Assembly (NCBI GenBank): GCA_024704765.1
Contig: JAKMXF010000338.1
Span: 69,133-133,132, forward strand
DNA from: Oopsacas minuta
Taxonomy: Eukaryota > Animalia > Porifera
Length of the DNA stretch: 64,000 nucleotides
Reading direction: 5' to 3'
Made by a program: the position numbers and the translations under genes. A model generated the notes under the pieces. The model was given only the letters and a program-made list of their open reading frames with translations. It searched no databases and had not been told where the DNA came from. The first letter of the stretch is position 1. Each line of letters starts with the position of its first letter. This document shows, piece after piece, positions 4,316-50,000 of the stretch.

Positions 4316-5288
4316 ATTGACCTTCTAATAGAATTGAGCAAGTTACTAAACCCTGAAACTGTTGCACTAAATGAGAATAATTTTGATCACCTAAATGGCC
4401 ATGTTAAAGTGGAAGTCAAAGTTTCAGTGTTTGACGGAAAAACCTTAGCAACAATGACGGGTAAAGGAGGAGCGCCATGTATTGCCTACAAAGCAACCCG
4501 GAGCGATATCAATAGTATTACGAAAGTGGTTTCCGGGTTTCCTTCAGATTGTTCGATAGAGGATATCAGAGAGACAATCCGTGAGTTAACCTCTGGTGGA
4601 AAAGAGCTGATGAGCTACAATACAAATTAACGGTGTGGGATTACGCACGGACCTGCAAGTGACATCGATGTATTTCCTGCAGCACCTTTACATTCTTACG
4701 TAAGAATTTTAGATTGGTTTTTAAACCTCATTTACTGAATTGCAGCAGGAAAGTCCAAGTGGACTGAAGATCAAATGGTGCGAGATTATCGAGGTTTAGT
4801 ATGCAAGCATATCCATGACCTTACGAACTTATTATTCGACCAAGCAGGAGGAAGTGGGAACACAAGCACTGATAACATGGCAAGAACATTTTGTTCATAT
4901 ACAAACCCGTGTTTTAGGATCGCTTTATCATTGATAACAAATGTTTATAGAGATGCTTTGACAGAGATTGACAAGAATCTATCTGCATTACTCAGAGTTG
5001 CTAATAGTAATGAAGTTGTCGCTGTAGACAGATTTCGTGTGTTAAGTCAAGAAACCTACGTACTAACCTTACAAACCTTCCCTAGGCATCTATTAGAAAT
5101 ACACTCCACCAATTCTTAGCTCATGCCCATCAGTTTATTGAGAGAAATGACAGGGTAGGATTGTGTAGTCTTTCTGAACAAGGGTTAGAACAAGGACATA
5201 AGTTGGTCCGAGAGTTCTCAACACATTTGAGCAGGAAATCAGATTTCCTAAGTGGGTTAAGTGATGTTGCAATGAGGCTCTACATCTA

Positions 5289-8268: not shown

Positions 8269-11200
8269 AGTGACCTACGTTATAATAAGGCCTGTTCACT
8301 AGTGCGATTTTTGGACCATGGATGTCGTTTAACTCCATTAAATTTTACTTCAAATAATCATGTATTTGATGTTATTCACCCAAATCGTGAACTTAAAAAT
8401 TGTTCTTAAGCGACTTTGAAGACCATGGATGCATTTAAGTCCTTATTTTTACAATAAATGTTATAGCTAGAGAAAATTAACTAAAATGTGAATCCATGAG
8501 ATAAAATATTATTGGGTTTAATACTAAGCATATTTCAAATAGTGAGTGCCTGATAATAGTACAAAATAATAAAAGATACGTATATTAAAGTGGTATGTGA
8601 TAAGTTAATTAGCCTTCAATTTCTTTAATTTTCGAGTATTTTCGACACACGGTTTCAAGGGTAGCTGGGAATTCATGTTCTTAATCTTATTTGATATAAG
8701 ACAGTTTGAAGTAGCAGTCAATAGTTTAGCTAATACATCCCACATGAGTGTACCACATTCGTCACACATCACTCTCCATACTTCAGCTTGTTCATCTTCT
8801 ATAAGACTTGTTGTTAACTGTATCAGGATACTTCTAGAAGGACCGGTTATAAAGTTATTGAATATGCTTGGTTGACTCTCGATAGAAGAGAATACTTTCC
8901 ATAGCGTAATAATTGCGTCTATGACATCACTACTTGGCCATTTTAGTGAGCCTCGGTCAATTATTTGAATTAATCGATATTCAGAACCTGAAGGTTCTTC
9001 AATTTCCATTTCTTTGTTTTTAGTGAGGAATAAGAGACATGATTGACATTTAGTAGAATGTTTGTAATAGGCATACACTGAGTAGCCTGCTATAAAGGAG
9101 AGTGATTGGAGTATTTGCTTGTTTAATTCTATCCCTGAATATCCCTGAATCGCCGAGAGATACATCTCCAAGCTGAAAGACGCATGGGAGTCTTGGCCAC
9201 AAGAGGATGAGCACGATTCTAAGAAGTTCTTAAGTGATATGCTATCTTCTACAGGCTTTTTCGAAAATAATTTGAGTATGCTGGACAACTTTATTCTCCG
9301 TTCTGTTTCAAGGACCTGGCAATAGCTAATGTGGCATTGTGCTCCTGACATCATCCTATACAAGTCAAAATGATGCTCAAGTGGGTCATTTTGCAAGAAC
9401 GAAGAAAGGACGTACGAATAGCCACAATTTCCAGTCAGATGGTTTACAATGCACGGGAGTGCAATACAAGAGTGACGGAAACTTGTAAAGGTTTGAGGAC
9501 TTAATTTACCTCTTTTGTCAGGCATGACTCGCCAACATTCAGCCCAATCAACTACACATTGAAGGAACATAAATCTGGTATCATTGTAGGTAAGTGGAAC
9601 TGAAAATTCATCTTTGTGAAGGATACCCTTGTTCGGAGTATTGATGTTGAATAGCTTCCTAACATTACAAATAATGGTAATAAAGTCTGTAGTCTGTGAA
9701 TTTGTAGAAGTGTGGTATCGCGATTGGTAGCTAACGTTTAATGCAGCGGCTGTAGATTCATCAAATATCCTTAAAGCTAAAGAAACATTTTGTCGTTCTA
9801 AAGTGGAAGGCCAACAAGCTTTAGAGTTTAATCTTGGAGCTAATTTAGCAACAGAGTGTTGGTCACTTTTATATAATTTGCGAATTTCTTCGAAAACTGC
9901 AGTGCTCGCAACTTGTATGTTCTCAAAATCTGGATAAGTGAATGTTTATTATAATCTATTTGGTTTAGCCAGTTATTACGTATCGATTTGATTATATGAA
10001 CAAAGTCAAAAAGCAAAAACAATGGCCGGTTTGAGTCCATAGGGTGAGGAACAATATGCTCTAGAAGTCGGCTGGGAGAAAATAACTTGAAAATGTTAAC
10101 GTTCATCGGGTAATTATCAGTACATAAAACGTGTACAGAGAGTCCACATGCTTCAACATCACGAATAACATCTTTGATGATAGGAAAGAGTACCTCAGCA
10201 GATGAGCTGGAACAGGGCAGTAAACGGACAATACTGGACCATCGTTTGGACAAACTTGATATCATGAAGGCAAAAACGGTTTTTGCAGGATCAGTAGGAT
10301 TCAAAGAAGATCCAATTATCTTACCTCCTTTGTATGTAAATGTGGATTTTACATGAATTTCATCCATCTGAATCACTACATTCGTTCCCATTTGTTAAAC
10401 TGAGTGACTGATTGTTTGAGATAGTTGGTGAACTCAGAATCCAAACCAAAATTAGAATATAAGCGCTTTAGAGTAGAAAGGTGCGGCAATGGTAGACAGT
10501 CCAGGGATTGAAGATATCTATAACAAACTGGCGAGATAAGCTGGCATTTGAGGGACAAGACAAGAGTTTGATGTTGTATCGCCTCATAGTTTTCGCGATC
10601 AAAGCGTTATCCAATTGGCATAGAATAAACTGAAGACTTGATAATAGAGGCTGTTGGTTTCCAGATTCTTCTCCAGTTGAAAGGGAGTCTATAGCTTTAC
10701 GAATGCTTCCGGTTGCCTCTCTGACATGGCGTTGGAATGTTTCAGGAGAATTAGTAGGGGCAGAATGGTTTTCAATTTCTTTAAGCAAATCGTTAAGTTG
10801 ACGAATATCATTTATCTGAGTGAGAGAAAGAGGAATGCGTATACCTTCGTAGAAACCCATAGTATGTAATGTTTCGGTAATAGTTAACGAGCATCTAATT
10901 GCAATCAAACTGTTATTCGTTATAGAACGTTTGAGTAAATTAAAGGAATTATCATCAGAAGACCAAACTAACCAATGATTAGGCAAACCCGAGTGCTTCG
11001 TTTTGGATACCAAGTTTTCCAGTGTGGTAATCTGAAAAAGTTCTTTGTCTTGGTTATACTGTAATAGACTCTCATTTATTGCAGTATCAATCAAATGCTG
11101 TTCTCTCAAATATCTATCAAATCTTGGAGGTATGGTGTCAGATGACGAAGAGAAATGAAGTGGACATCCAGGTAGAAATCTTGGCACTGCATCCTTCTGC

Positions 11201-11890
11201 AATTTAGGCTTAGCTGGTACTTCTAAGTATGTTCCATCTAGTTGATGGATAGAAAAACTGGTCTGAATTTCTTCGTCGAGGAAATGTTTTGAGCACACAA
11301 ACACATTCTTTAAGTCTCTGATACCTTCTCTACAGAGCGCTCGATGCCAACGATTGACAAGATCAGGTGGACCATTTGGCAACTTAAAGGCTGGAGTATA
11401 AGGTTCTCCTGCGTAATTACTCCGACATCCGGGGGCAGAACACCTGTTGGGCATGACAAGCTAATTGAAACTATAAAAAGGAGAAATCGAGAGGTAGATT
11501 AAAGAAATGCACATAACTGATAGAACAGGGTGGAGAGCGGCATTACAGAGATAAAAGCTAAGTTGTCTAAACAACTTAGGATAAAAGTACAAGAGGACAA
11601 GGTACAACGGGTAGTGAGTACGTAAATGTATTGTTTCAATAAATTGAATGTAACAAAAAGGTTGATTCATAAATTAATATAAATATTATGGGTTTCTAAG
11701 AAATACTTTTTACAAGCCTTCAACGAGATCCATGGTCTTTAAAATCGCCTAAGAACAATTTTTAAGTTCACGATTTGGGTGAGTAACATCAAATACATGA
11801 TTATTTGAAGTAAAATTTAATGGACTTAAACGACATCCATGGTCCAAAAAATCGCACTAGTGAACAGGCCTTATTATAACGTAGGTCACG
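8269..11890 (-). mobile_element. P-superfamily (THAP) transposon with ~160-bp TIRs and 7-bp TSD
   Basis: GTCTGGA at 8262-8268 and 11891-11897; near-identical inverted ends (A/C)GTGACCTACGTTATAATAAGGCCTGTTCACTAGTGCG... over ~160 bp. Confidence 0.92.
8605..11454 (-). pseudogene. THAP-domain P-element transposase (THAP9-like), disrupted
   Basis: THAP: MPNRCSAPGCRSNY...FKLP...W..AL.R...VCSKHF...KDAVP. Catalytic-region motifs QMDEIHVKSTFTY, CTDNYPMN, FDFVHIIKSIRNNW, QNDPLEHHF. Spread over ORFs 10468-11454, 10376-10558, 9840-10391 and 8605-9570. Confidence 0.92.
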
Positions 11891-26560: not shown

Positions 26561-28870
26561 GCTAAGATATTAGGGAGCATAAACTATTTGATATTTTTGG
26601 ACATAGACATGAACACTGGTTGGAAAAATGCATAAATAATGGTAACAAAGAATAGATATAATCGGATAATGGCGAAACTTTTACTATAGTTAAATAAATA
26701 TGAGTGCGGTTGTATAGTATATTGTAGGCCCAGTCGAGAAAAGTATAAATTATCGGTTCAACTTCTACTTAAGGGAAAAGTTGCCTTCACCATTTACTAG
26801 GAATATGCGAAACTTAAATTTGAAAATTATTTCCATTTGACTCTTGCGGTTTTATATTATGCTGTGTCACTTTCGCAAAATTGATTACATACTGTCCGAA
26901 TTTTCAAATTCCTTTGACTTAGCCCCTTTAATATGTCATTTGGTAATAGTAAGTCGCATATTTGCTATTGAATGGTGTAGTAATCGAATTTCTATGTCCA
27001 AGGATACTCAAGCTATCAAGATTTATTTGCATATTCTATCATAACCTAACGTTATTACCCACCCCCCTTTTTCCGATTATTTGAAAATTCTATATTCTTA
27101 GTAGAATTTGTTACAGACTCGCCAAACTTAGTATATTTCTTTATCTAGATCCAAGTTCATCAATAGGTCACCACAAAGAAATTTACCTACATTCCTTATC
27201 TCTTTTTCTTAACTCAGTTACCATTTATCTAGCATGGAATTTATGGTCAATTATAGTATCTATATAAATACTCGATCAAATTATTCATATTATTGAGTGA
27301 TCATATTCCTAAAATTTATTTATTTTTGGAATGGCAGAAAACACGTGTAGTAAAGTATTTCATCTTATTTTTGGCTATCCAGGACCCATACCAGAAAATC
27401 AACTTCCAATAAAACCAGATATATGTAATCATTATAGAATGCTTAGAAATGAAGATTCTAGATCAACTAGAGATGATATAAAAGAACTAACTGAAGTATT
27501 AGTATGTATCTATAATTTGGCTTCCATACCCACTATATCAGAGCTCAAATTAAAACAGTAAATCAATTCTGATATTATACAGAGAGCTAAATACTACGGA
27601 AAAAGTATCCAAAACAAGCAACAACCTGACCGTATACAGCCTATTATTTCCGATTTCAATGTCTTGTTCGATGTCTCAAGTTGCAAATGCCTAATTCAGG
27701 AAGGTAAGTATTTTTGTTCTCTCGATAAAAGATAACACGCCGTGAGTGGCCATTTCTCTTTGATCCGCGAAACACTCGAAAATTATTTATTTCCAGCTTG
27801 GATTGCATGACAACCTCTAAAAATAATGTTAAACTAAAAAGAAAACAGGCGCAATATGAAAGAGAAGAAATGGAAATGAAGAGATTACATGCAGTTCAAC
27901 CTTCGCAAGAATTTATAGCATCTGACTTCGAAGAGTTTTAATCTTTTTTACTCGAGTACATCTAATATTCACAAGTATACACGTAATCGTAATCAATTAC
28001 GAAATTTAGCCATAATGTGCGATAGATATCAAATTAGCAATCGGGCATGCGCAGCTATAGCTAACGCAGTGCTGCAGGGTTACGGTATTATCACACAGGA
28101 AGAAATTAGCGAAATTATTGATAGAAACAAACTCCGTAGATCTAGGTTCTCTGTGAGAAAGGAATTGTCTAATGAGGCTCACTAGACTATCAATGATATA
28201 TCTGCAATATATTTTGATGGTCGTAAAGATCAAACTCGAGTACTGGTAGAAAGAGAAGATGGACATTTGCATCAGGATACTGCAAATGAAGAACATTATA
28301 CTGTTTTATCTGAACGGAGAATCAGTATGTTGCCCATATAACACCAAGTTCTGGTAAAGCCAAAGATATAGCAAGGGAATTGACTGATCTTTGCAGGGAG
28401 CGTAATTCATATTTAATGGCGGTTGGAGCTGATGGAGCTCGTGTTAACACTGGAATCTACAATGGATGTATCAGATTACTCGAACAAGAGTTCACAAAAC
28501 CACTCCACTGGTTTATTTGCCAATTACATGGTAATGAACTTCCATTGAGGCATCTCTTTCAAATAGTAGATGGAAAAACCAGTGCACCCAATTCTTTTAA
28601 AGGAGTAATTGGTGAAGAACTTAATTGTGATTTTGCTTGCAAACCAATTACAGCGTATCATCATTAAGGCGGTAAAACTCAACTTATTGATTGCGATATT
28701 CTCAAGAATTTAAATAAAGATGAGAAATATCTATATAATATCTGTAATGCATTTCAGACCGGTATTTGCTCATCTGAACTGGCATCTATGCAACTTGTTC
28801 CTATACATCATGCTAGATAGACAACACTGGCCAACAGATTACTTAGGTCGTACATTTCTACGATACATCT

Positions 28871-31792
28871 CACAGTGTGGCAAAAAGGCGAAAATGAGGG
28901 ATTAGCCAAATTGTAACTTCAAATCGATAAGATTTGTATTATATTTATATATGAAATCGACCCCGTACATTTCACTGGACAAGTCAAATTTTTAATTATC
29001 TCACTCAAAATATGTGAGGATGACATCATCACTAAAATCACTAATTCATAATTTTAATAGACTATCAGGGATTCATTAAGGGTATCCTGTTCAGATGTTT
29101 CAAGCATGCTATCTTCGTTTGATTAGCCTTTCTAATACTTTTGTGACGATTTAAAACCAATACAGGGTCACTGAAGCACAAAAGTCTGACTAAAATATCA
29201 CGAAAGTTGTCAGAAAAGGATGTTTTTCTTGCTAAATTTTCTCTATACCTTCTGACATACTTATTGCAAGCCTCTAAGCATTCTTCAGAAAGGTTTTGTG
29301 GTCCATAACCATGATTATAGCAATAAATTATTTGAAAACAATGAGCAAGCAGTTTATGAGGAGAGGGAGAGATGCTTACCCAAGGAAAGTGATTTAAAAC
29401 AATTCATACGCTCCCTTGCAAAGATTTTCAAGACCATGACAATTAATGTGGTCTTTGCTGTTAACTATCCTCAAAATCACCGAGAGGTTGGTTTGAATCA
29501 TTTTAAGGGTTGGTTTATCAACTGGGTTAATAGTGGAAGTAGCGCATCTGAAGAAATCTTTTATCTCGGAAACAGTCTCGTGCAACATTACCAGTTGTTG
29601 AAGTCCCCCCTTGACTAGAAGGAACATCGATTTTGATACTACATTTGGCATCTATAATTGATCTTATTCGTTTCAAAGAATCCTGTACTTTTGTGCATGT
29701 AGGTGACCACTTTTTACAACCTGCGTCTAAGTGATATATGTTTAACATGTACCACCTAAAGACACAGAGATACGCATGCAATGGAGAAGCTGCTAAGATG
29801 TTTATTTCGGAAGTAGGGTGGTGGGTAATGCCACAGCGTTTTTTGGAAGGTAGGGCAAATATTTCGTCCTCATTAATATCGTGAAATAGTTGATTAGCAT
29901 CAGTAATGTATCTATTAATTGGAAAACCTGATCTGGCCCACTCTAAACTATTGATTTCCTTTCCTGTGGCCGTGCTAAGATGACATGATGCACCACCCGC
30001 TTCATCTAATAGACCTGCCATTTTGGTATCAAATATAGATCGAATAATTTCTACATTTATGTGACGATTTTCAACTGCAATTCCTTGTTCTACAATTAAT
30101 TTAGTTGCGGGATTTACGAGTGTATCCATAATAAATTTAACGTTTTCGTGATTCTCCTTCAACGCAATTAAGCAGACTGCTCTGAATGGAAAAGGTGAAT
30201 TGGGGGAAGTATTGACGTATAATGAGAAACCTGTGTTATCTGTTATACTAAGAATTTTAAATCCGAATATAATAATACTGTGTGTGTCTAAACCTAGATT
30301 TGAGTTCACTTGGTTGTAAGAATTGTGTGAGCCTCACCCAACTAGACCGTCTGCATTTCGAACTGACAAAGGATATTGTGAGTTGTTTACAATGGAATCG
30401 AAGCTTAAAAGATGTCGTTGAATTGTTAGTTCGAGTATTTCGAAATAAGGAACTGATACACCAATAGAGTTACCTTCAGGGTTAGTGACAAATAAAACGC
30501 TTTGTGAAAGAGAAATTTCTTGACGGTATTGCGATATTACTTTATAGGATGGGAATACGATATCTTGTTTCAGTAATTTCTTCAACTGTGTGTATTTGAA
30601 TGCTCCAATTTCGAGAAGATCTATTATATAACTTGACATAGGTGTCGAAACTTTCTTTACATTTCCGTACGTGCCTGTTGCGATTATTTCTTTGCATATA
30701 CTGGAAGTTTCTCGATCATATTCCTGGTTAGAAATTAATTCCAGAGCTAAAGCAGCAACTTTCTTCTCGTCAACCTGCTCCCTTTGGGCAACGAACTGAA
30801 TATGCTTAGGCAAAACGTTCAAACGGTTCGAGCAGCTTTCATTGTGAGTTTGAATAATGGTTTTCTGATCTCTGTTAGATTCTCTTCAATAAATGAGTGC
30901 TGCTCAGGGATAGAATCGACTGTGTCAATCGACATTTGTGATCCAGAGTTACAAGTGTTGATTGAATAAAACTCCATACCCTCCCAAACATTTAAGTTGT
31001 AAATCTTCTGGTAATGATCTCTGGATTTTCGAAGATTTCTTAATTTCCAACTAATAGTTTCAAACAGATCATCTGACAAGGAATGAACTTCAATTATCTG
31101 ACGAGCTGCACCAGAACAATTCCAACCATGTGATTTATAAATATCGTATGCTTCTTTTTGTGAAATAAATGTTTTATCCATTGAACTAGTGGAAGGAAGT
31201 ATTGTCTAGTAAGTATCAATAATGGGATAAATAACACAAGTTTGAAATTCAGCCGATCTCAGGGAAATTTGGATTGAAATTCGAAATGGGTGGGGAATGG
31301 GGCGCTAAAAATTGTATAAAATTAAGGGTAGTACAGTACTTTAACATTGTTAAAAATATAGGGGCCCCATAATGTACCCATTTAAAAATCTACCTCTGAG
31401 TATGTCGAAATACATCCCGAAATTTGGTAATTTTTGGGGTTTCGAAAAAGAGTTCTCTCAAAAATTTCTATTAAGTTTGGGAGGTATTAATGTTCAAAGT
31501 TATGATAGGGAATACTTATAAATGAATCGCGAATTGAATTACTTGCAAGTAGGCATTTGATTGCATCTACTGTTAGAATTTATGATAACGTAATTACAGT
31601 TCGGAAAATGTTTTGTAACCTTATAAAATTACGTCATTAGACAATGAGAATTTAAATTCACAAATAGAAGCTGAACCACAGTAAACACAATATAGTTGTA
31701 TTCTCGACAGACTATTGAACAATATTAGAACTATTATAGATAGTTATGGGACCACTAATAATTTGGCTAATTCTAAATGATGCCACACTGTG
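28871..31792 (-). mobile_element. Complete Transib/RAG1-like transposon with RSS-like asymmetric TIRs
   Basis: CATCT|CACAGTGTGGCA...TGCCACACTGTG|CATCT: perfect 5-bp TSD and identical terminal 12 bp; shared ATTAGCCAAATT block 23 bp (left) or 14 bp (right) after the heptamer. Confidence 0.95.
29065..31181 (-). pseudogene. RAG1-like/Transib transposase, ~700 codons, inactivated
   Basis: RKPLFKLTMKAARTRLNVL (frameshift ~30822); GLVG*GSHNSYNQ (first catalytic D appears as V, stop at 30334); NSPFPFRAVCLIALKEN; IFDTKM; SCHLSTAT; RCGITHHP; SPLHAYL; GGTSTTGNVAR; PHKLLAHCFQII; LSEECLEACNKYVRRYRENLARKTS; RLLCFSDP. Confidence 0.92.
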
Positions 31793-32438
31793 CATCTCAC
31801 ACCTGAATTATCTCGAATTGTCAATTTTATTGTCAATTATTATGCACCAGTTTGGTTTAGAATCAGGAGTTACCCGATTTGCACAGATGACCTAAAGGTA
31901 TTTTTTGCGATAGCTTTGTTGCGAGACCTATCGGAGTCTGACCAAGAATAATTTGTGATGTGATACAAGGAAACTCATATTTTAGTCATCCAGAAAATGT
32001 CCTCTTATCCATGCTTGCAGATAATGATGACCAAATTAGACAAAAAGCAATGAAGACTATTTTAGATATCCGAATTAACAGTTCATCATTTAGACCGATT
32101 TAAATTCGCACATTCAATCTTCCTTCAATAAGGTTCACTACCGAAACATATGTGAATTTGATTGATTGGGAAACCGCTTTTATCACAGAGTCGCCTTTAA
32201 CAAGATACCTCTCAAAAGAAGTACTAATTAATTGTGTAGGTGCTCCACTAGAAATTCCAGCATATCCATACCATACACAAGCTGTTGAAAGAACTATCCA
32301 ATTAGTGACTAAAAGTCCGTGTACAGTAACAGGAGAAGATGCGAGTCATGGATTAATTCTTTCAACTGTAACATCAAGAGAAGAAATGCCCGGATTTGAG
32401 TCAAAGAAAGATCATGCATGTTAAATAAACTTGATATA

Positions 32439-33816
32439 CAGTCTGTCAACTTGGAATTCGGAGGATTTTTGTTTTTCCCTAGCTAGAAGTACATTTAGTG
32501 TATTTCTATTCTAAATAAGTTATTAGAATCCTTAAACAATCAATTATATAGTAGGCCTAATAATTTATCATTTTTCCTTTACTTCTCTGTACTAATTTGG
32601 CTCTTTTTGGCATCGATGACCAAAATGGACGTAAAAATTCATGTACTAATGAATTCCATACTTCATTTAGCTCCCTTTCCAGCTCGTTTAACTTTCGAGT
32701 TGTTTTCAAATCGATTTCTCTCTTGAGCCACGGCTAGAGGTTCTCGATCGGATTCAAATCCGGACTACAAGCAGGCCAATCTCTCCTATGTATCCCTTTG
32801 TCCTCCAGGTACCCTTTAGCAAGGTTGCACGTGTGTTTAGAATCGTTGTCTTCCTGGAAAACCAATCCATCAGGGTACAAAACACTTGCTTATTCTACTT
32901 AACATTCATGCAGAATGTCGCAGTAAAGTCGCCCGGTGAGATTTTCTCTGAAAACCTCGATAGGAAACTTTCCACGTGCTGAAAACGCTCTCCAAACATG
33001 CAATTTCGGAGAGTGTTTCCTACTGGGGTTTACTAGTTTCGAATCACCTATACACCAGACACATACTCTGCCACCAGATAGCCAAATGGACATCTCATCA
33101 CTAAAAATCACTTTCTCCCAAACATCTGTTAGACTTAGCCCTATCGATACGATAAGCCTTATGGGTTTGTGTAAACATCGAAATCTTTCTAGCAACCTTG
33201 CGGGTGAAGCCACGCCGCTTCATCTCAATCCTCACAGCCTCGTGTGAGAACGATAGACCCCGCCTTTTGTTAAATTTGGAAGTCAACTTCCTCACAGATA
33301 ACCTAGGATTGTTGATTGCCAAACTAACAAGTGATCTAGCGTTATTTGCTTTGATCTGACGCTGTTTACGGGAACCAATCTTTCTAGCAACGGATTCAGC
33401 ATTCCTCAATTTGTAAACAGTGCGATAAACTATACATTTTGGAACTCCAGTTCTTCGATATAATTCCATACAATTCGTGATTCCAATGTCGAAAAGTATA
33501 TTGATATTGTTACGCTGTTCTTGCTCGTTCATTTTAAGGTTTGAATTGATGAAAGTAAAGAATTATTAGCGAAGAAATAGAAGTGTTGCGAGAATTTCAA
33601 GTGATAAATTTTATATAGAATATTTGATTAGTAACTAAGTATAAATTCAAATATTTTGTAACCGGAGTCAGCTAGAGAAGTTCAGTTGGTTAAGAAATGA
33701 CTAGAAATAGTTGAAAAACACAAGGTATCAATATTATTACGACAACCAATATGAAAATGCAATTAGGAACATTCTAACATCGAAAAAGATTTTCCCAATT
33801 TCAAGTTGACAAACTG
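32439..33816 (-). mobile_element. Tc1 (DD34E) element inserted just after the hATm-like stop codon
   Basis: TIRs TA|CAGTCTGTCAACTTGGAATT and AATTTCAAGTTGACAAACTG|TA; VIFSDEMS, KLHVW, FQEDNDSKH...WPACSPDLNPIE (34 residues between D and E); ORFs 33101-33532 and 32899-33213. Confidence 0.9.
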
Positions 33817-34456: not shown

Positions 34457-37400
34457 CTGTAAGCCCTCCAGTGGGGTCCAGGTGCGAAGCCCCTAGCCAC
34501 CCAACTAACTGCAATGTCATGTGTATTTTATTCTATTCTCACTGATTGAAGGTCTTTCCTATATTCCACTTGTTTCTAGTTTAGATTACTACATTTAATC
34601 TATATTATCTAATAGCGTATGCACGTATGTAGAATATCTGTTAAATTATTCATTCTGTATAGAATATTACAATCCAAAATCTAAATTACGATACTATACT
34701 ACAAAATTGATTTTGCGCTTTTTTGCAAGTCTAAATCGATAATTTACGTTAGATACATCAATTTCTATATCCTTATGAATATATACCAAAGCTAATCCGT
34801 TTAGTCGTTCGTCCAACATTTATGGTCTGAGCCTGTTTTTCAAAATTTTCATGGCACTAAAGCATCTTTCTGGAGTACATGTAGTAACAGGTAATGTCAA
34901 TGCTATTTGAAATAATTTCTTTACATTTACGAAGTGGAATGGCAAACTTGAAAGGGACACATGGATATCTCCCGTATCCACTTTTCTTTCAAATGATTGG
35001 AAGACTCTAAATTCCTCAAAAAATTTCATCTGTGTACAATTCAATAGTGTTTGATAGAAATAAACCACATTTTTTGAGTAAGTTTACATTTATTTCATGT
35101 GTTTGCAACAACCTATTCAATTGCAACGCAATCTTTGATTGACCTGAAAATCTCAAATTGAGATGCTCAATAACTCCATCTATGTAGGCAATCCAAATCT
35201 TTGGTCTGTAATTGTCACAGGTACTTTCACTTGTAAGATTCGAAGAAGTACTCATAGTTACACAAGATTCATCATATGATATACTGAGAATTCCTTTAGA
35301 CGAATTTCTTGGTTTAGACAGTGGTATTCCTAAGATTTGTGAGTATGATTCAACTGTACTGAATATATTAAGCTTACTCCCATTCCATTGTTGTGAACCC
35401 TCTCTCAATACGGCAAGCGTTTCTATTGTTGATTCAATTAATTGCATGCATTCAACATAATTTAGATTCACAGTCTGCAACATCTTGGAAAGAATAATAG
35501 TAATTGACATTACTTTCCCAAAACATGCTAGTGATGTCAAAAAGGAGGAAACTTTTAATAGAATTTAAGTGAGAAGGTGCTTGAGCTCAAGATTTACAAA
35601 TTGAAATGATTGTCGCTAATAATTCTTTCTAGGCCTTAAACAATAGATGAAATATTGGAACAGAATCTTATAATTGCATCATGTCTCTCAACAAACCTAG
35701 TGGAACAATATGAAATGAACTGTGCGTCGAAAATATTCCTTCTTCCAGAAGAATCATTGATATAATTTATCATCGCAGAAGCAATATCAAACATGTGTCT
35801 TATTTCTGTTAATTTTGAAGAATCATTAAGCACAAGGTTTAATCTGTGACTTGCACAGTGCAAGTATATTGCAAGTAGAGCATGTATCAGTATACGCGTA
35901 GTGACTCCTGGAATATGGCCTAACATGGTTGAACACCCGTCATAGCATTGAGCTATACAATTGTCAATATTCAACCCAATAGATGCAACACGACTTAGTA
36001 TTTCTTCAGTGATTGACTTAGCATCCACAAATTCCATTGCTCCGTAAGATATAAATTCTTCTTTGATAAATGCATCTTCAGATACATAGCGAATGCAGAA
36101 ACATAACTGCTCTTGGTGGGAACTATCAGTTGTCTCATCAGCAAGTATGGCAAAGTATCCAATTTTCTTTATTTCACTTACAATTGTTTTTAGAATTTCT
36201 TGGCCACACAGATCTATAAACGTGTTCTGGATAGTTTTTGAAATATACATCGCATTTTTATTGGTTTTTACTAAATGTTCCTTTAATAATTTGTCATCAC
36301 TTTCAACCCTAAAAGCTAATAAAGCATGGAAATTCCCAGATTGTCCAGAGATATCAACTTCATCATTTAATTGGCCATCATCCCTGTGGCCTCTTAGAGC
36401 AATACCCAATCTACCACACAAGATTATCGTTTTGATGATCGGAATAAGGCGTTCCATATTTTCATTTTCCTCGTCCTTACGTACTTCACAAATTGATGTT
36501 ACTATATTTTTTGAATTTTGCAGGTTGTAAACGAAAATGTCGGCTCGTTCTTGAGCAGATTTGTGGTAATCTTTTAAAATATGTTCTTTAACCTCATCAT
36601 GAATCTTTTTGTAATTTGTCAATGGAGTTTGAACAAATGAACCAACTTTTGGCAACTTTCCTTTATCATTTTCAACTTCTCTCGAAGTGAACTGTGCACA
36701 AGGAACACAAAAAACTCCCTTAAATAAAAACGAATATTTGAAACTATCAAATTTTCCAATGTTATGAGAAATGATAAATTGACCCTCTGAGTCTTCCTTT
36801 CACCCTTAGAAGCTGAACTGATAAGCTTTTAACCAAAAGGAAATGAAAAATTAAGATCAGACATGCGCTGTTTTGCGGGCAAATTTACTTTTATAAATCA
36901 GAGTGTGCAGGACAATATAAAAAACAATCATTCTCGCGGAACTTATACAAATGTCCGATATCATATAAATCTAGATCGGTATCCAAGGATGATCTCTCTG
37001 TTATACTTTCAGCAATGTAAGAAGAATCTTGATTTAACAGTGATCCTGGGTCTACCAACACCGTTTCTTGCATAGTTGTATCATCACCATCTATATTTAG
37101 ATTGACTCGGGGTTAGATGACTCACTGGAAGTAGCATTTGAACTCAAATAATCCAATAAACATTTTCTTTTGGGATCCATAATCAAATTTGGTATATCCA
37201 AATTTACAAATATGAGAAAAAGTCAAAGTACAAATAGCTATCAGGCCACACCCAAGCAAATTAAAAATGGTCAGGAAAAATTGAAGAGTGGTCAAACCTG
37301 CCCAAAGTTATACAAGCAAAGGTAAAGGTGAAGGCAATTACCTAACCTAGCGCTATATATATATGTACATTATACTAATTTCACAACCGAGAGAAGTTGA

Positions 37401-47055: not shown

Positions 47056-50000
47056 CAGTGGCGGATCTAGGGGGGGGTATGGGGGGTATGCATACCCCCC
47101 CACCAGCTTTGTGAAATTATTTATTTCGTCTACTCAGTAGAGTGAATAAAGTATATATCTTGTTATAACACAACCCTAATGAATTTATTTTCTCGACTAT
47201 ATACTTGTAATTCGGTAAATGTTCCTTCAATATTATTTCATTATTGCCTACTGTAGTTATTTAGGAGCCATAGGAATATAATTCTGATATAATTTTAGAA
47301 TATAAATTTCACCATATTTCTAACTATTTGTTTACCCTTTTTATAATTAGTATTTCTTTATGCTACGTAAGAAAGTTTGTTTGACCAAAGATCAGTCAAC
47401 TTTGAGCAACTTTTTTGCAAAGTCTCAACTTCCAGCTAATTCACAATTACCAGATATTGACTCAACAGATGTAGTTCAACATTTAGAAATGGACGAGTCT
47501 TATGATTCAATTTTGTCTAATACGGATAGTGCATCTTCTAACAATCCGCATGACATTGTTTCTATTTTCTCTAAGACGGAATATGATTGGGAACGTGACC
47601 GTAAAAAGAAGATCTCTGACCTTCAGAAGCAATACTTACTTTTGAATCACATAATGCCAGATTCCAACTTCAAATACCCTTACAGTGTGAGAAGTGGAAA
47701 ATGTTCTCAAAAGGTTTATCTCTCTTTGTCTCACTTAACAGGTAAAAACCACGCTTTTAAATATTCATTTGAAATGCAGGGTGTTGTATGCGTTCCATGT
47801 GTACTCTTTGCCAATATTGAAGTATCGAACGATCGTGGTAAATCAACGAAGTTAGGAGCCCTTGTATTACACCCATTTCGGAATTATAAAAAGGTACATG
47901 AGAAATTACGAGATCATCTCCGTAAACAGTACCATGTTATTTCTCAGGAGCGGGCTGATTTATTCTTAAACCATCTAGTAACAGGAAATTCTTTAAGCAT
48001 AATAAATCAATTGAGTGACACTCGGAGAAATCAAGTATTGGAAAACCGTCAACGCCTAATACCAATTGTGAAAACAATAATATTCTGTGGTAGACTCGGA
48101 ATTGCACTCCGTGGTCACAATGACGATGGCATTATCGACATTGGTACTGCGATTTCTGGGCGAGAAGGTAATTTCCGAGCATTGTTGGCATTTCGAGTGG
48201 ATAGTGGAGATTCTATACTGGAAGAACACTTGAATAATTCGAATAAAAATGCAACTTACGTATCTAAAACAATTCAAAATCGCCTTATTAAATTGTGTGG
48301 TGATCAAGTATTGGAAAAAATTGTGGATGAAGTTAAGGAGAGTATCTTTTTTTCTATTCTTGCAGATGAAACTACAGATAGTTCGCATCAAGAACAGTTG
48401 TGTATTGTACTACGCTATGTTTCCAGTGATTTTGTAGTAAAAGAGGAGTTCGTTGGGTTTGGTTCAGTTGATAACCTTTCAGCAAACTCGATAACGCACG
48501 AAATTTTGGAGAGGCTTGGTGAAATGGGTTTAAATATTCGAAATTGTGTTGGCCAAGGTTACGATGGTGCGTCATCATTTTCGGGTTACTTGAATGGCGT
48601 TGCTAAACAAATTAAAGAGAGTGCTCCAATGGCTGTATATGTCCATTGTGCTAGTCATGTCCTAAATCTCGTCTTAAATGAGAGTTCTTCAGTTCCTTCT
48701 ATACGGAATATGTTTGATACCATTTCCAATACTATAACTTTCGTAAACGAGTCTTCGAAACGAAAAGCAGTATTTCATGTTAACCTAATAAATTATTGCA
48801 CAACTAGATTCATACAACGTCATGATGCCATTGTTAGATTTTCAGAAAACTTTGAAAATGTTATACATGGTCTGGAAGATATATTAGCAGATAGTGAATT
48901 TAACAGCAAGACTCGTTCTTTGGCTTTATCGCACCTAAATTCCCTTAAAGATTCTACCTTTTTGATTGCACTAGCTTCTGCTAAAAAGGTTATGTCTCTG
49001 ACAATGATATTATCTAGGATTTTACAACAAGTTAACCTTGACTTTTGCCATGTATTTGCCATTCTTGATGCTACAATACTAGAATTACAAACAATGCTAG
49101 ATGACAAGGAAGAGAAAGATTGGAATAAACTGGAAAACTCAGTTTATAAAGAAGCTGAAAGATATGCTGTAATAGCTGGGGTTATTATTACAGCCCCCAG
49201 GCAAGCTTCTCACCATATCCAAAGTGTTTCATATAGTCAATCAGCTGTTCAATTAACGTATATAAATGAAACTATTCCAATCAACACCGAACAATTTTTT
49301 AAATGCTCTGTTTGGTATCCTTTTTTGAGCACAGTGATTGATCATCTTACAAAAAGGTTTTCGAAACAATCGAGGTCAACACTTGGATTATTCAAACTGA
49401 TAAATTCTGAATCAATAGACACTGATATACTTAAAGAGATTTACAATATGTATGAAATGGCTTTAAATTGCCAAGAAGAGGAATTATTCCAAGAATTAAA
49501 ACTATACCAGAGTTATCGAAAATCAATCCCTTTACCTGATTCACTAGACATTCTGCATTTATTACAGCATTTATCACCAATATTTACAAAATTAAAAATC
49601 ATTTTGCAAATTGCTGTCACTCTGCCTATTACAACTTGTTCAGCGGAGCGTTCTTTTAGCGCTATGAAAATCCTGAAATCCTATATTAGATCCACAATGA
49701 CGGATGACAGACTAACTGGTCTAGCACTGATGTATATTCATAAGGATATTCCATTAGATGTGGTTAAAATTATTAACACATTCGCAATTTCAGGAGATCA
49801 CCGCATGAATTTCGTAATTTAGTGTTATTATTAGTACTAGTAGGGTATATTATGTATTTAGGATTCAACCAATAGTTACTAATAATATTTAGCTATTACA
49901 TTCAGAAACTCTCATTATATATTAAACTATGAACACACATACATAATGTTTGTATTAAGAACACAATTATTTTGGAGTACCTTAGAATACTTGTCAAAAT

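Follow-up and report, generated by a model that had tools for sequence, protein, structure and literature searches.

Transib transposases have been described as approximately 700 aa long, with 5-bp duplications of the target site (TSDs) and CAC heptamers; in some families the 5' end resembles a recombination signal sequence (RSS) of the RSS12 kind and the 3' end one of the RSS23 kind, and nested insertions as well as non-autonomous copies are known (Kapitonov & Jurka 2005, PMC1131882). Regions resembling the nonamer-binding domain (NBD) of RAG1 and asymmetric ends have also been reported for Transibs (Martin et al. 2023; Tao et al. 2022), and Subgroup I in particular is characterised by CTT1, asymmetric ends and equivalents both of RAG1 alpha11-alpha12 and of the NBD (Tao et al. 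2022, PMC9435367). We report that 64 kb of contig JAKMXF010000338.1 of the glass sponge Oopsacas minuta (the whole stretch analysed, 64,000 nucleotides, here called the window) carry a complete-ended Transib of 2,922 bp at window positions 28871-31792, with a disrupted transposase gene. Our data suggest, with a probability that we put at roughly 0.87, that this unit is a copy of a young, multi-copy O. minuta Transib whose lineage was already dead when it was moved in trans. Specifically, a Val at the first catalytic Asp, a stop and a 2-bp deletion occur together in five copies at five unrelated loci, three of which have perfect TSDs of their own.

The element resembles described Transibs, HzTransib among them, in having one gene in approximately 3 kb and a RAG1-core-like DDE transposase of approximately 700 aa with D-D-E motifs, and it shares with them the 5-bp TSD, ends that start CAC(A)GTG and the lack of a RAG2-like partner. 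HzTransib of Helicoverpa zea (PDB 6pqn) is its best match among solved structures. As in Transib5, Transib2_AG and TransibN1-3_AG, a short-spaced 5' end is combined with a 23-spaced 3' end, and nested insertion in other transposons and non-autonomous derivatives are further points of likeness. It differs from described Transibs in its host phylum (Porifera, Hexactinellida) and in the inner part of its ends, where a box, ATTAGCCAAATT, takes the place of an A-rich nonamer and the short spacer is 14 bp instead of 12 bp. With ProtoRAG (PDB 6b40) and RAG1 the sponge protein shares a homologous core with the same D-D-E and ZnC2/ZnH2 residues and an NBD-like region, and its ends agree with the RAG1 12/23 RSSs in the heptamer, which is the consensus RSS CACAGTG, in the 5-bp TSD and in being unequal. 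In contrast to ProtoRAG and RAG, there is no convergent RAG1L-RAG2L pair and no A-rich nonamer, the scores are much lower than with HzTransib, and the element is multi-copy and mobile, not domesticated. Judged by its alignments, the element is a Transib and not of the RAG1L/ProtoRAG type.

Ends, empty site and genomic copies

The unit begins with CACAGTG at 28871-28877 and ends with CACTGTG at 31786-31792. Its gene lies on the minus strand, and the right end is hence the 5' end and the left end the 3' end. The terminal inverted repeat (TIR) is perfect over 12 bp, CACAGTGTGGCA, and occupies 28871-28882 (plus strand, 3' end) and 31781-31792 (minus strand, 5' end); in the 64-kb window, at one mismatch or less, these two element ends were the only occurrences (0.1 expected). 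Further in, the 12-bp box forms a second perfect inverted repeat at 28901-28912 (plus strand) and 31760-31771 (minus strand). The distance from heptamer to box is 23 bp at the 3' end (28878-28900) and 14 bp at the 5' end (31772-31785). Directly outside both ends CATCT is duplicated, at 28866-28870 and 31793-31797.

Removing the unit together with one CATCT in silico gives a single open frame, ...LLRSYISTIHLTPELSRIVNFIVNYYAPVWF... (also given as ...LLRSYISTIHLTPELSRIVNF...). The same junction was found in the sequencing reads: a Logan contig from the same organism joins 28865 directly to 31793 and thereby skips 2,927 bases (2,922 + 5), and it represents a paralogous copy of the interrupted repeat, approximately 5% diverged, with one CATCT. 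Further Logan contigs stop at ...ACGATA, immediately before 31793. These contigs, with a precise empty site and one CATCT, are the strongest support for an insertion and are independent of the window. The preliminary description of this DNA had reported a unit of 2,922 bp between CACAGTG and CACTGTG with a perfect CATCT duplication; this can be read directly from the sequence, the empty site is present in paralogues, and the observation of a complete-ended unit with a 5-bp duplication is confirmed.

Protein relatives at 97% identity are O. minuta gene models, and copies of the element were recovered by fetching the loci of such protein relatives; one of these loci, L004, is that of the window itself (100% identical). 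Six further copies are 96.6-98% identical over element positions 1-2922 and end at the same bases, five of them (L001, L002, L003, L006 and L008) being full-length and one, L005, having an internal deletion of 526 bp. The CACAGTG heptamer is present at both ends in 7/7 copies, and the terminal 12 bp of the 3' end are near-identical, with one substitution each in L001 and L006. The end layout of 14 and 23 bp is likewise constant: the long spacer has the same length in all seven, and the short one measures 13 bp in L003 and 14 bp in the six others. TSDs (in gene orientation) are perfect in four copies, AGATG in the window copy and TGTGG, CGCAG and CTCTG elsewhere; a fifth has AAGCC/AAGTC, a match of 4/5, and the remaining two have none. 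No homology was found between the flanks of different copies, which indicates that the copies are not segmental duplicates. Whether other copies would end elsewhere or without 5-bp TSDs had been named in the preliminary description as a way to refute it; all six others end at the same bases, three with perfect 5-bp TSDs and one at 4/5.

Some further observations concern individual copies and their annotation. The 5' flank of L001 (L001:3187-6110) and the 3' flank of L002 (L002:2339-5258) both read ATATA, as if the two had exchanged halves or had been misjoined in the assembly. The 3' flank of L001 also shares seven bases (AGATGTA) with the flank of the window copy, without homology beyond. In the L005 copy (L005:2927-5324) the 526-bp deletion removes the region of the first catalytic Asp; the gene model of a protein kinase C spans this copy, which presumably sits in an intron. 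The O. minuta models LOD99_15110, _4803, _13838, _8571, _8819, _1807 and _9031 are spliced Transib fragments ('hypothetical protein'), one of these fragment models being labelled 'MULE transposase domain-containing' by UniRef.

The transposase gene, its relatives and its lesions

The transposase pseudogene covers 29054-31181 on the minus strand, from an ATG at 31179-31181 to a family-frame stop at 29054-29056, and consists of five consecutive stop-to-stop pieces. If every break is bridged by an X, it comprises approximately 710 codons, which is the length of an intact protein (P0220) from a sister family. The 2,922 bp are thus laid out as a 2.13-kb gene, a leader of 611 bp and a trailer of 183 bp. 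Inside the unit there is no further open reading frame (ORF) of at least 110 aa, neither a RAG2-like gene nor space for one; all copies have one gene, in agreement with the earlier statement that a RAG2-like gene would find no room.

Compared with the PDB, the C-terminal piece matched HzTransib (6pqn) at 2.4e-8 and BbRAG1L (6b40) at 0.023, the best match of the core piece was HzTransib at 2e-4, and the N-terminal and middle pieces gave no match. An exhaustive HMMER search with the core piece returned 404 relatives, some of which are full-length (590-780 aa), while a word-based search with a mixed alignment, dominated by its first sequence, did not return the Oopsacas proteins. With a family profile made from full-length relatives and the window pieces, HzTransib was matched at 4.4e-68 (233 bits), BbRAG1L at 8e-43 (150 bits) and RAG1 at 6e-31 (110 bits), many RAG1 structures lying at about 1e-30, and the alignment with RAG1 spans the NBD through the C-terminus. 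The Pfam family RAG1 (PF12940) is matched by full-length relatives, and a Pfam scan of the five window pieces did not match it at E ≤1; the pieces are therefore merely too short or too divergent for Pfam. The motif matches to the RAG1 core that the preliminary description had given are borne out by the HMMER alignments to RAG1, BbRAG1L and HzTransib, HzTransib is the best match of the profile, and a match to another DDE superfamily is excluded. Its identification as a RAG1-like (Transib) element with 5-bp TSDs and CAC ends thus stands; membership of the RAG1L/ProtoRAG type does not, since HzTransib scores highest.

The alignments also locate the active site (all on the minus strand). The first catalytic Asp, the D of DGSG opposite RAG1 CDGMGD (D600), falls at 30340-30342 and now reads Val, so that Val, as had been proposed, occupies the catalytic position itself and not a neighbouring residue; the position is Asp (GAT) in L006, a copy of a sister lineage, and in many read contigs. 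The second catalytic Asp is intact at 30028-30030 in FDTKM, aligned with RAG1 YDEKL (D708), and the catalytic Glu is intact at 29272-29274 in SEECLEACNK, opposite the GNEAGNK motif of HzTransib and BbRAG1L (GNEAGNK / GNESGNK, E962). The zinc ligands of the CxxC motif align at 29983-29985 and 29974-29976, and the ZnH2 histidines of HxxxxH at 29356-29358 and 29341-29343.

Outside the catalytic residues the sponge proteins depart from HzTransib in two regions. In the first, 48 residues that follow CxxC (ARSGFPINRY...SEINIL) stand opposite 13 in HzTransib in the sequence alignment, i.e. approximately 35 extra residues between CxxC and LH..L; this segment is continuous with RAG1 and BbRAG1L in the profile alignment. 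In the second, the N-terminal region aligns with the NBD of RAG1, whereas the solved HzTransib chain aligns only from profile position 163; the GRP(R/K) motif of this NBD-like region reads IRKP. Likeness to Subgroup I (MleTransib and Hydra Transib-9_HM) is seen in the asymmetric TIRs (14/23 here), the NBD-like region and named full-length relatives from the ctenophores Mnemiopsis and Bolinopsis. The segment after CxxC may correspond to RAG1 alpha11-alpha12, which is lost in Subgroup II of the HzTransib type. Differences are the IRKP reading and the C-terminus: the family-frame tail reads ...NRHKSIRKA-X-SNEDSMLETSEQDTLNESLIVY, and the Cys/His knuckle (CTT1, CCGHC-type) that was looked for in it was not found. 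A C-terminal CCHC knuckle is present in the distant relatives P0065, P0124, P0129 and P0170 and absent from most families of the sponge clade. On these alignments, the window family shares some of the Subgroup I traits and lacks CTT1.

A quick maximum-likelihood tree, unrooted and computed without HzTransib and RAG1L rows, placed all Oopsacas rows together with rows from ENA in one clade (SH-aLRT 100). A separate clade that includes the Mnemiopsis and Bolinopsis proteins falls into the same region of the tree, and the branch that groups it with the sponge clade (SH-aLRT 87) was drawn as unresolved. The sister of the window family (SH-aLRT 100, 55% protein identity) is the Transib family of P0220, whose element at L007:1828-4939 is 3,112 bp long, has an intact 710-aa ORF with 33 clustered members and is flanked by a perfect TSD, TAGAG. 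Its terminal 12 bp are identical to CACAGTGTGGCA, and the 5-bp TSD, the protein length and a 3' end that exceeds the 5' end by 9 bp are further common features. The two families differ in the spacing and in the inner box, which in L007 is GGGGAAATAGG and is separated from the heptamers by about 9-10 and 18-19 bp, as well as in the intact ORF and the element length of the sister.

The lesions of the window copy fall into shared and private ones (all on the minus strand). Five copies (window, L001, L002, L003 and L008) have in common the change from Asp to Val (GAT to GTT, at 30341), the change of the Ser in DGSG to a stop (TCA to TGA, at 30335 in 30334-30336) and a frameshifting 2-bp deletion near 29560 (29556-29564); at the last site L005 and L006 retain an extra AG. 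A 1-bp deletion near 29402 (29400-29406), also a frameshift, is present in 6/7 copies, i.e. these five and L005, and the frame is kept by L006 and by the sister-subfamily protein P0178. L006 retains the Asp, the Ser and both deleted stretches, and it carries other frameshifts. Only three lesions are private to the window copy. In one, a short homopolymer run at 30826-30829 has lost 1 bp, which shifts the frame in the NBD-like region; the lost base is present in the other six copies and in nearly all read contigs (+T after 30826). In the second, CxxC reads CHLS (29974-29985), where TGC has become AGC at 29974-29976 and the second Cys has become Ser; P0176, P0177 and P0178 read CHLC, and read contigs differ at 29976 (T>A). 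The third, a 1-bp deletion at 29122-29125, shifts the last approximately 22 codons (the acidic tail). Private substitutions amount to 1.06% in the window copy, the highest value in the dead group, and to 0.4-0.8% in the others. The preliminary list of lesions (Val at 30340-30342, stop at 30334, frameshifts and CHLS) is correct, its frameshifts being four indels, and the gene of the window copy is unable to make an enzyme.

Mobilisation in trans and its alternatives

HzTransib and RAG bind the ends, nick at the heptamer CAC, generate hairpins on the flanks and insert with a 5-bp stagger. The sponge transposase would follow the same route, with the inner box probably docking the NBD-like N-terminal region, and a transposase supplied in trans would need only the two ends of the element. 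A dead progenitor would then have passed on three lesions, i.e. the change of the catalytic Asp to Val, the stop two codons later and the 2-bp deletion; the window copy has inserted at a CATCT site inside a decayed member of a repeat that is more abundant, and has since acquired its private damage, i.e. two 1-bp deletions, the change of the zinc-site Cys to Ser and approximately 1% substitutions. That five copies with the same inactivating lesions reside at unrelated loci argues that transposition continued after gene death, with the transposase supplied in trans. It had been suggested earlier that the element could still be mobilised by an intact copy elsewhere: the shared Val, stop and 2-bp deletion directly support mobilisation in trans, and no intact transposase of the family was found in the seven copies or in the protein collection.

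Several points weigh against this reading. An intact transposase of the same family was found neither in the seven copies nor in the protein collection (P0218 as query, 233-740 aa), where the best intact relative was P0220 at 47% identity, and the trans-acting source is consequently inferred and not seen. L001 (ATATA/AGATG) and L002 (CTGTC/ATATA) have no TSD. The seven copies are approximately 98% alike and are therefore uninformative about constraint on the inner box and the 14/23 spacing. The lesions could in principle also have spread between copies by gene conversion. Variants of the same family with Asp and Ser at the lesion sites do exist in read contigs, including those of a run from a second organism. 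The contigs of this run (X5, labelled as another organism) are 85-95% like the element and in no case like its flanks, break off precisely at 31792/31793, and read Asp and Ser where the two lesions lie, which shows that a related Transib exists in another sample or species.

If gene conversion or ectopic recombination had carried the lesions among pre-existing copies, each copy could have inserted while the lineage was still autonomous. The two copies without TSD and the crosswise ATATA flanks of L001 and L002 do suggest exchange between copies, or else misassembly. However, the three lesions are spread over approximately 800 bp (30341, 30335 and ~29560) and linked in five copies, the same copies carry private substitutions (0.4-1.1%) along their length, and intact and distinct TSDs surround 3/5 of the dead copies; star-like descent from one dead progenitor is more economical, and we regard spread by conversion as very unlikely. 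Somewhat different is the possibility that the enzyme acting on the dead copies came from another Transib family, e.g. that of P0220 (L007); in favour of this, the failure to find an intact ORF of the same family can be cited, together with the 710-aa intact ORF, the 33 clustered members, the perfect TSD and the identical CACAGTGTGGCA tips of the P0220 family. Against it stand an inner box that is wholly different (GGGGAAATAGG vs ATTAGCCAAATT), a spacing of about 9-10/18-19 vs 14/23 and proteins that are only 55% identical, and the reads with intact Asp and Ser suggest that an autonomous source of the same family may exist beyond the seven copies; such cross-mobilisation appears unlikely.

A further alternative concerns the nature of the element, which might be a ProtoRAG-type transposon that has lost its RAG2-like gene. 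The profile does align with RAG1 and BbRAG1L across the NBD-like region and over the post-CxxC segment of approximately 50 aa that is missing in HzTransib, as such an origin would lead one to expect. But the bit scores rank HzTransib (233) above BbRAG1L (150) and RAG1 (110), each of the seven copies, like the sister family, is a one-gene element of 2.9-3.1 kb, the named full-length relatives are single-gene ctenophore proteins, and the same RAG1-like traits have been described in Subgroup I Transibs (Tao et al. 2022, PMC9435367). A ProtoRAG origin is accordingly exceedingly improbable, and the preferred reading remains that of a dead Transib lineage mobilised in trans.

The host repeat, the surrounding window and the significance of the family

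The repeat into which the element inserted extends on the plus strand over at least 27313-28865 to the left of the insertion, where a decayed ORF contains a hAT-like D...CxxH motif, and over at least 31798-32421 to the right, as supported by the joined open frame and by read contigs. Reads cover it 3-6 times as deeply as the insert. Pfam gave no match with six pieces of the repeat, an Atlas feature search pointed to DUF4371/FAM200-ZBED5 clusters (hAT-derived) at 0.86, which is rated as a lead only, and in a BLASTP comparison with an intact hAT transposase of the window (47360-49822) the D...CxxH motif alone aligned (E = 0.14). That the host repeat is hAT-like is plausible from this motif. The preliminary description had stated that excision restores a 'hATm-like' host frame; the restored frame is supported, and the label is reduced to a weak motif match.

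The hAT ORF at 47360-49822 (plus strand) is apparently intact and encodes 820 aa with matches to DUF4371 (1.3e-21) and the hAT dimerisation domain (1.4e-11); the minus strand carries a second DUF4371 ORF (35636-36655) as well as an ORF with a THAP domain (10468-11454). To the right of the host repeat, 32734-33532 (minus strand) holds a Tc1/mariner-type remnant with a 143-aa ORF that is HTH_Tnp_Tc3-like and a DDE fragment (DNDSKH...DLNPIENL). At 4334-5119 (plus strand) the window contains another Transib-like gene, which is divergent: the ORF at 4334-4630 is 34% identical, over 85 aa, to the core of the element (E = 3e-13), with DGK and GGxxC motifs, and the ORF at 4775-5119 has a GG..T.N.AR motif. 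CACAGTG ends for this gene, looked for at 1690/6301, were not seen. To judge from its ORFs, the window is an island rich in transposons. Estimates of copy number from read depth were rejected: the large ORFs code for hAT, THAP and other proteins of repeats, and no evident single-copy gene offers a baseline.

No sponge Transib is named in the papers searched, and the O. minuta genome paper (PMC10280926) gives only a pooled RepeatMasker class ('Mirage, P-element, Transib', 1.22% of the genome). With the present family, documented by its exact ends, its TSDs and an empty site, the RAG1-related superfamily extends to Hexactinellida. The locus adds a clean empty site, evidence from shared lesions for mobilisation in trans, a tree of the sponge clade and the contrast between identical tips and family-specific inner boxes. 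For annotation, it means that several LOD99 'hypothetical protein' models are pieces of this transposon. The picture of RAG origins is unchanged; publications on Transibs already report NBD-like regions, asymmetric ends and non-autonomous copies. The dead-lineage Transib, well documented as it is, exemplifies a kind of element already known and reveals no new principle.

Dead copies with intact ends, together with a sister family that has an intact enzyme, the same 12 bp and another box, provide natural test material from which the recognition of unequal ends in the absence of RAG2 could be learned. A broader possibility, which is tentative and on balance doubtful, is that one-gene Transibs have undergone a radiation of their own in glass sponges, in which CACAGTGTGGCA is constant, each family has its own inner box and the 3' end is always 9 bp longer. 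If this is true, and if the NBD-like domain reads the box and enforces the pairing of short with long ends, it would amount to a rule of the 12/23 type without RAG2, operating in one of the earliest-branching animal lineages, and the Transib families of this genome would constitute a natural swap panel in which the reading of that rule could be followed.

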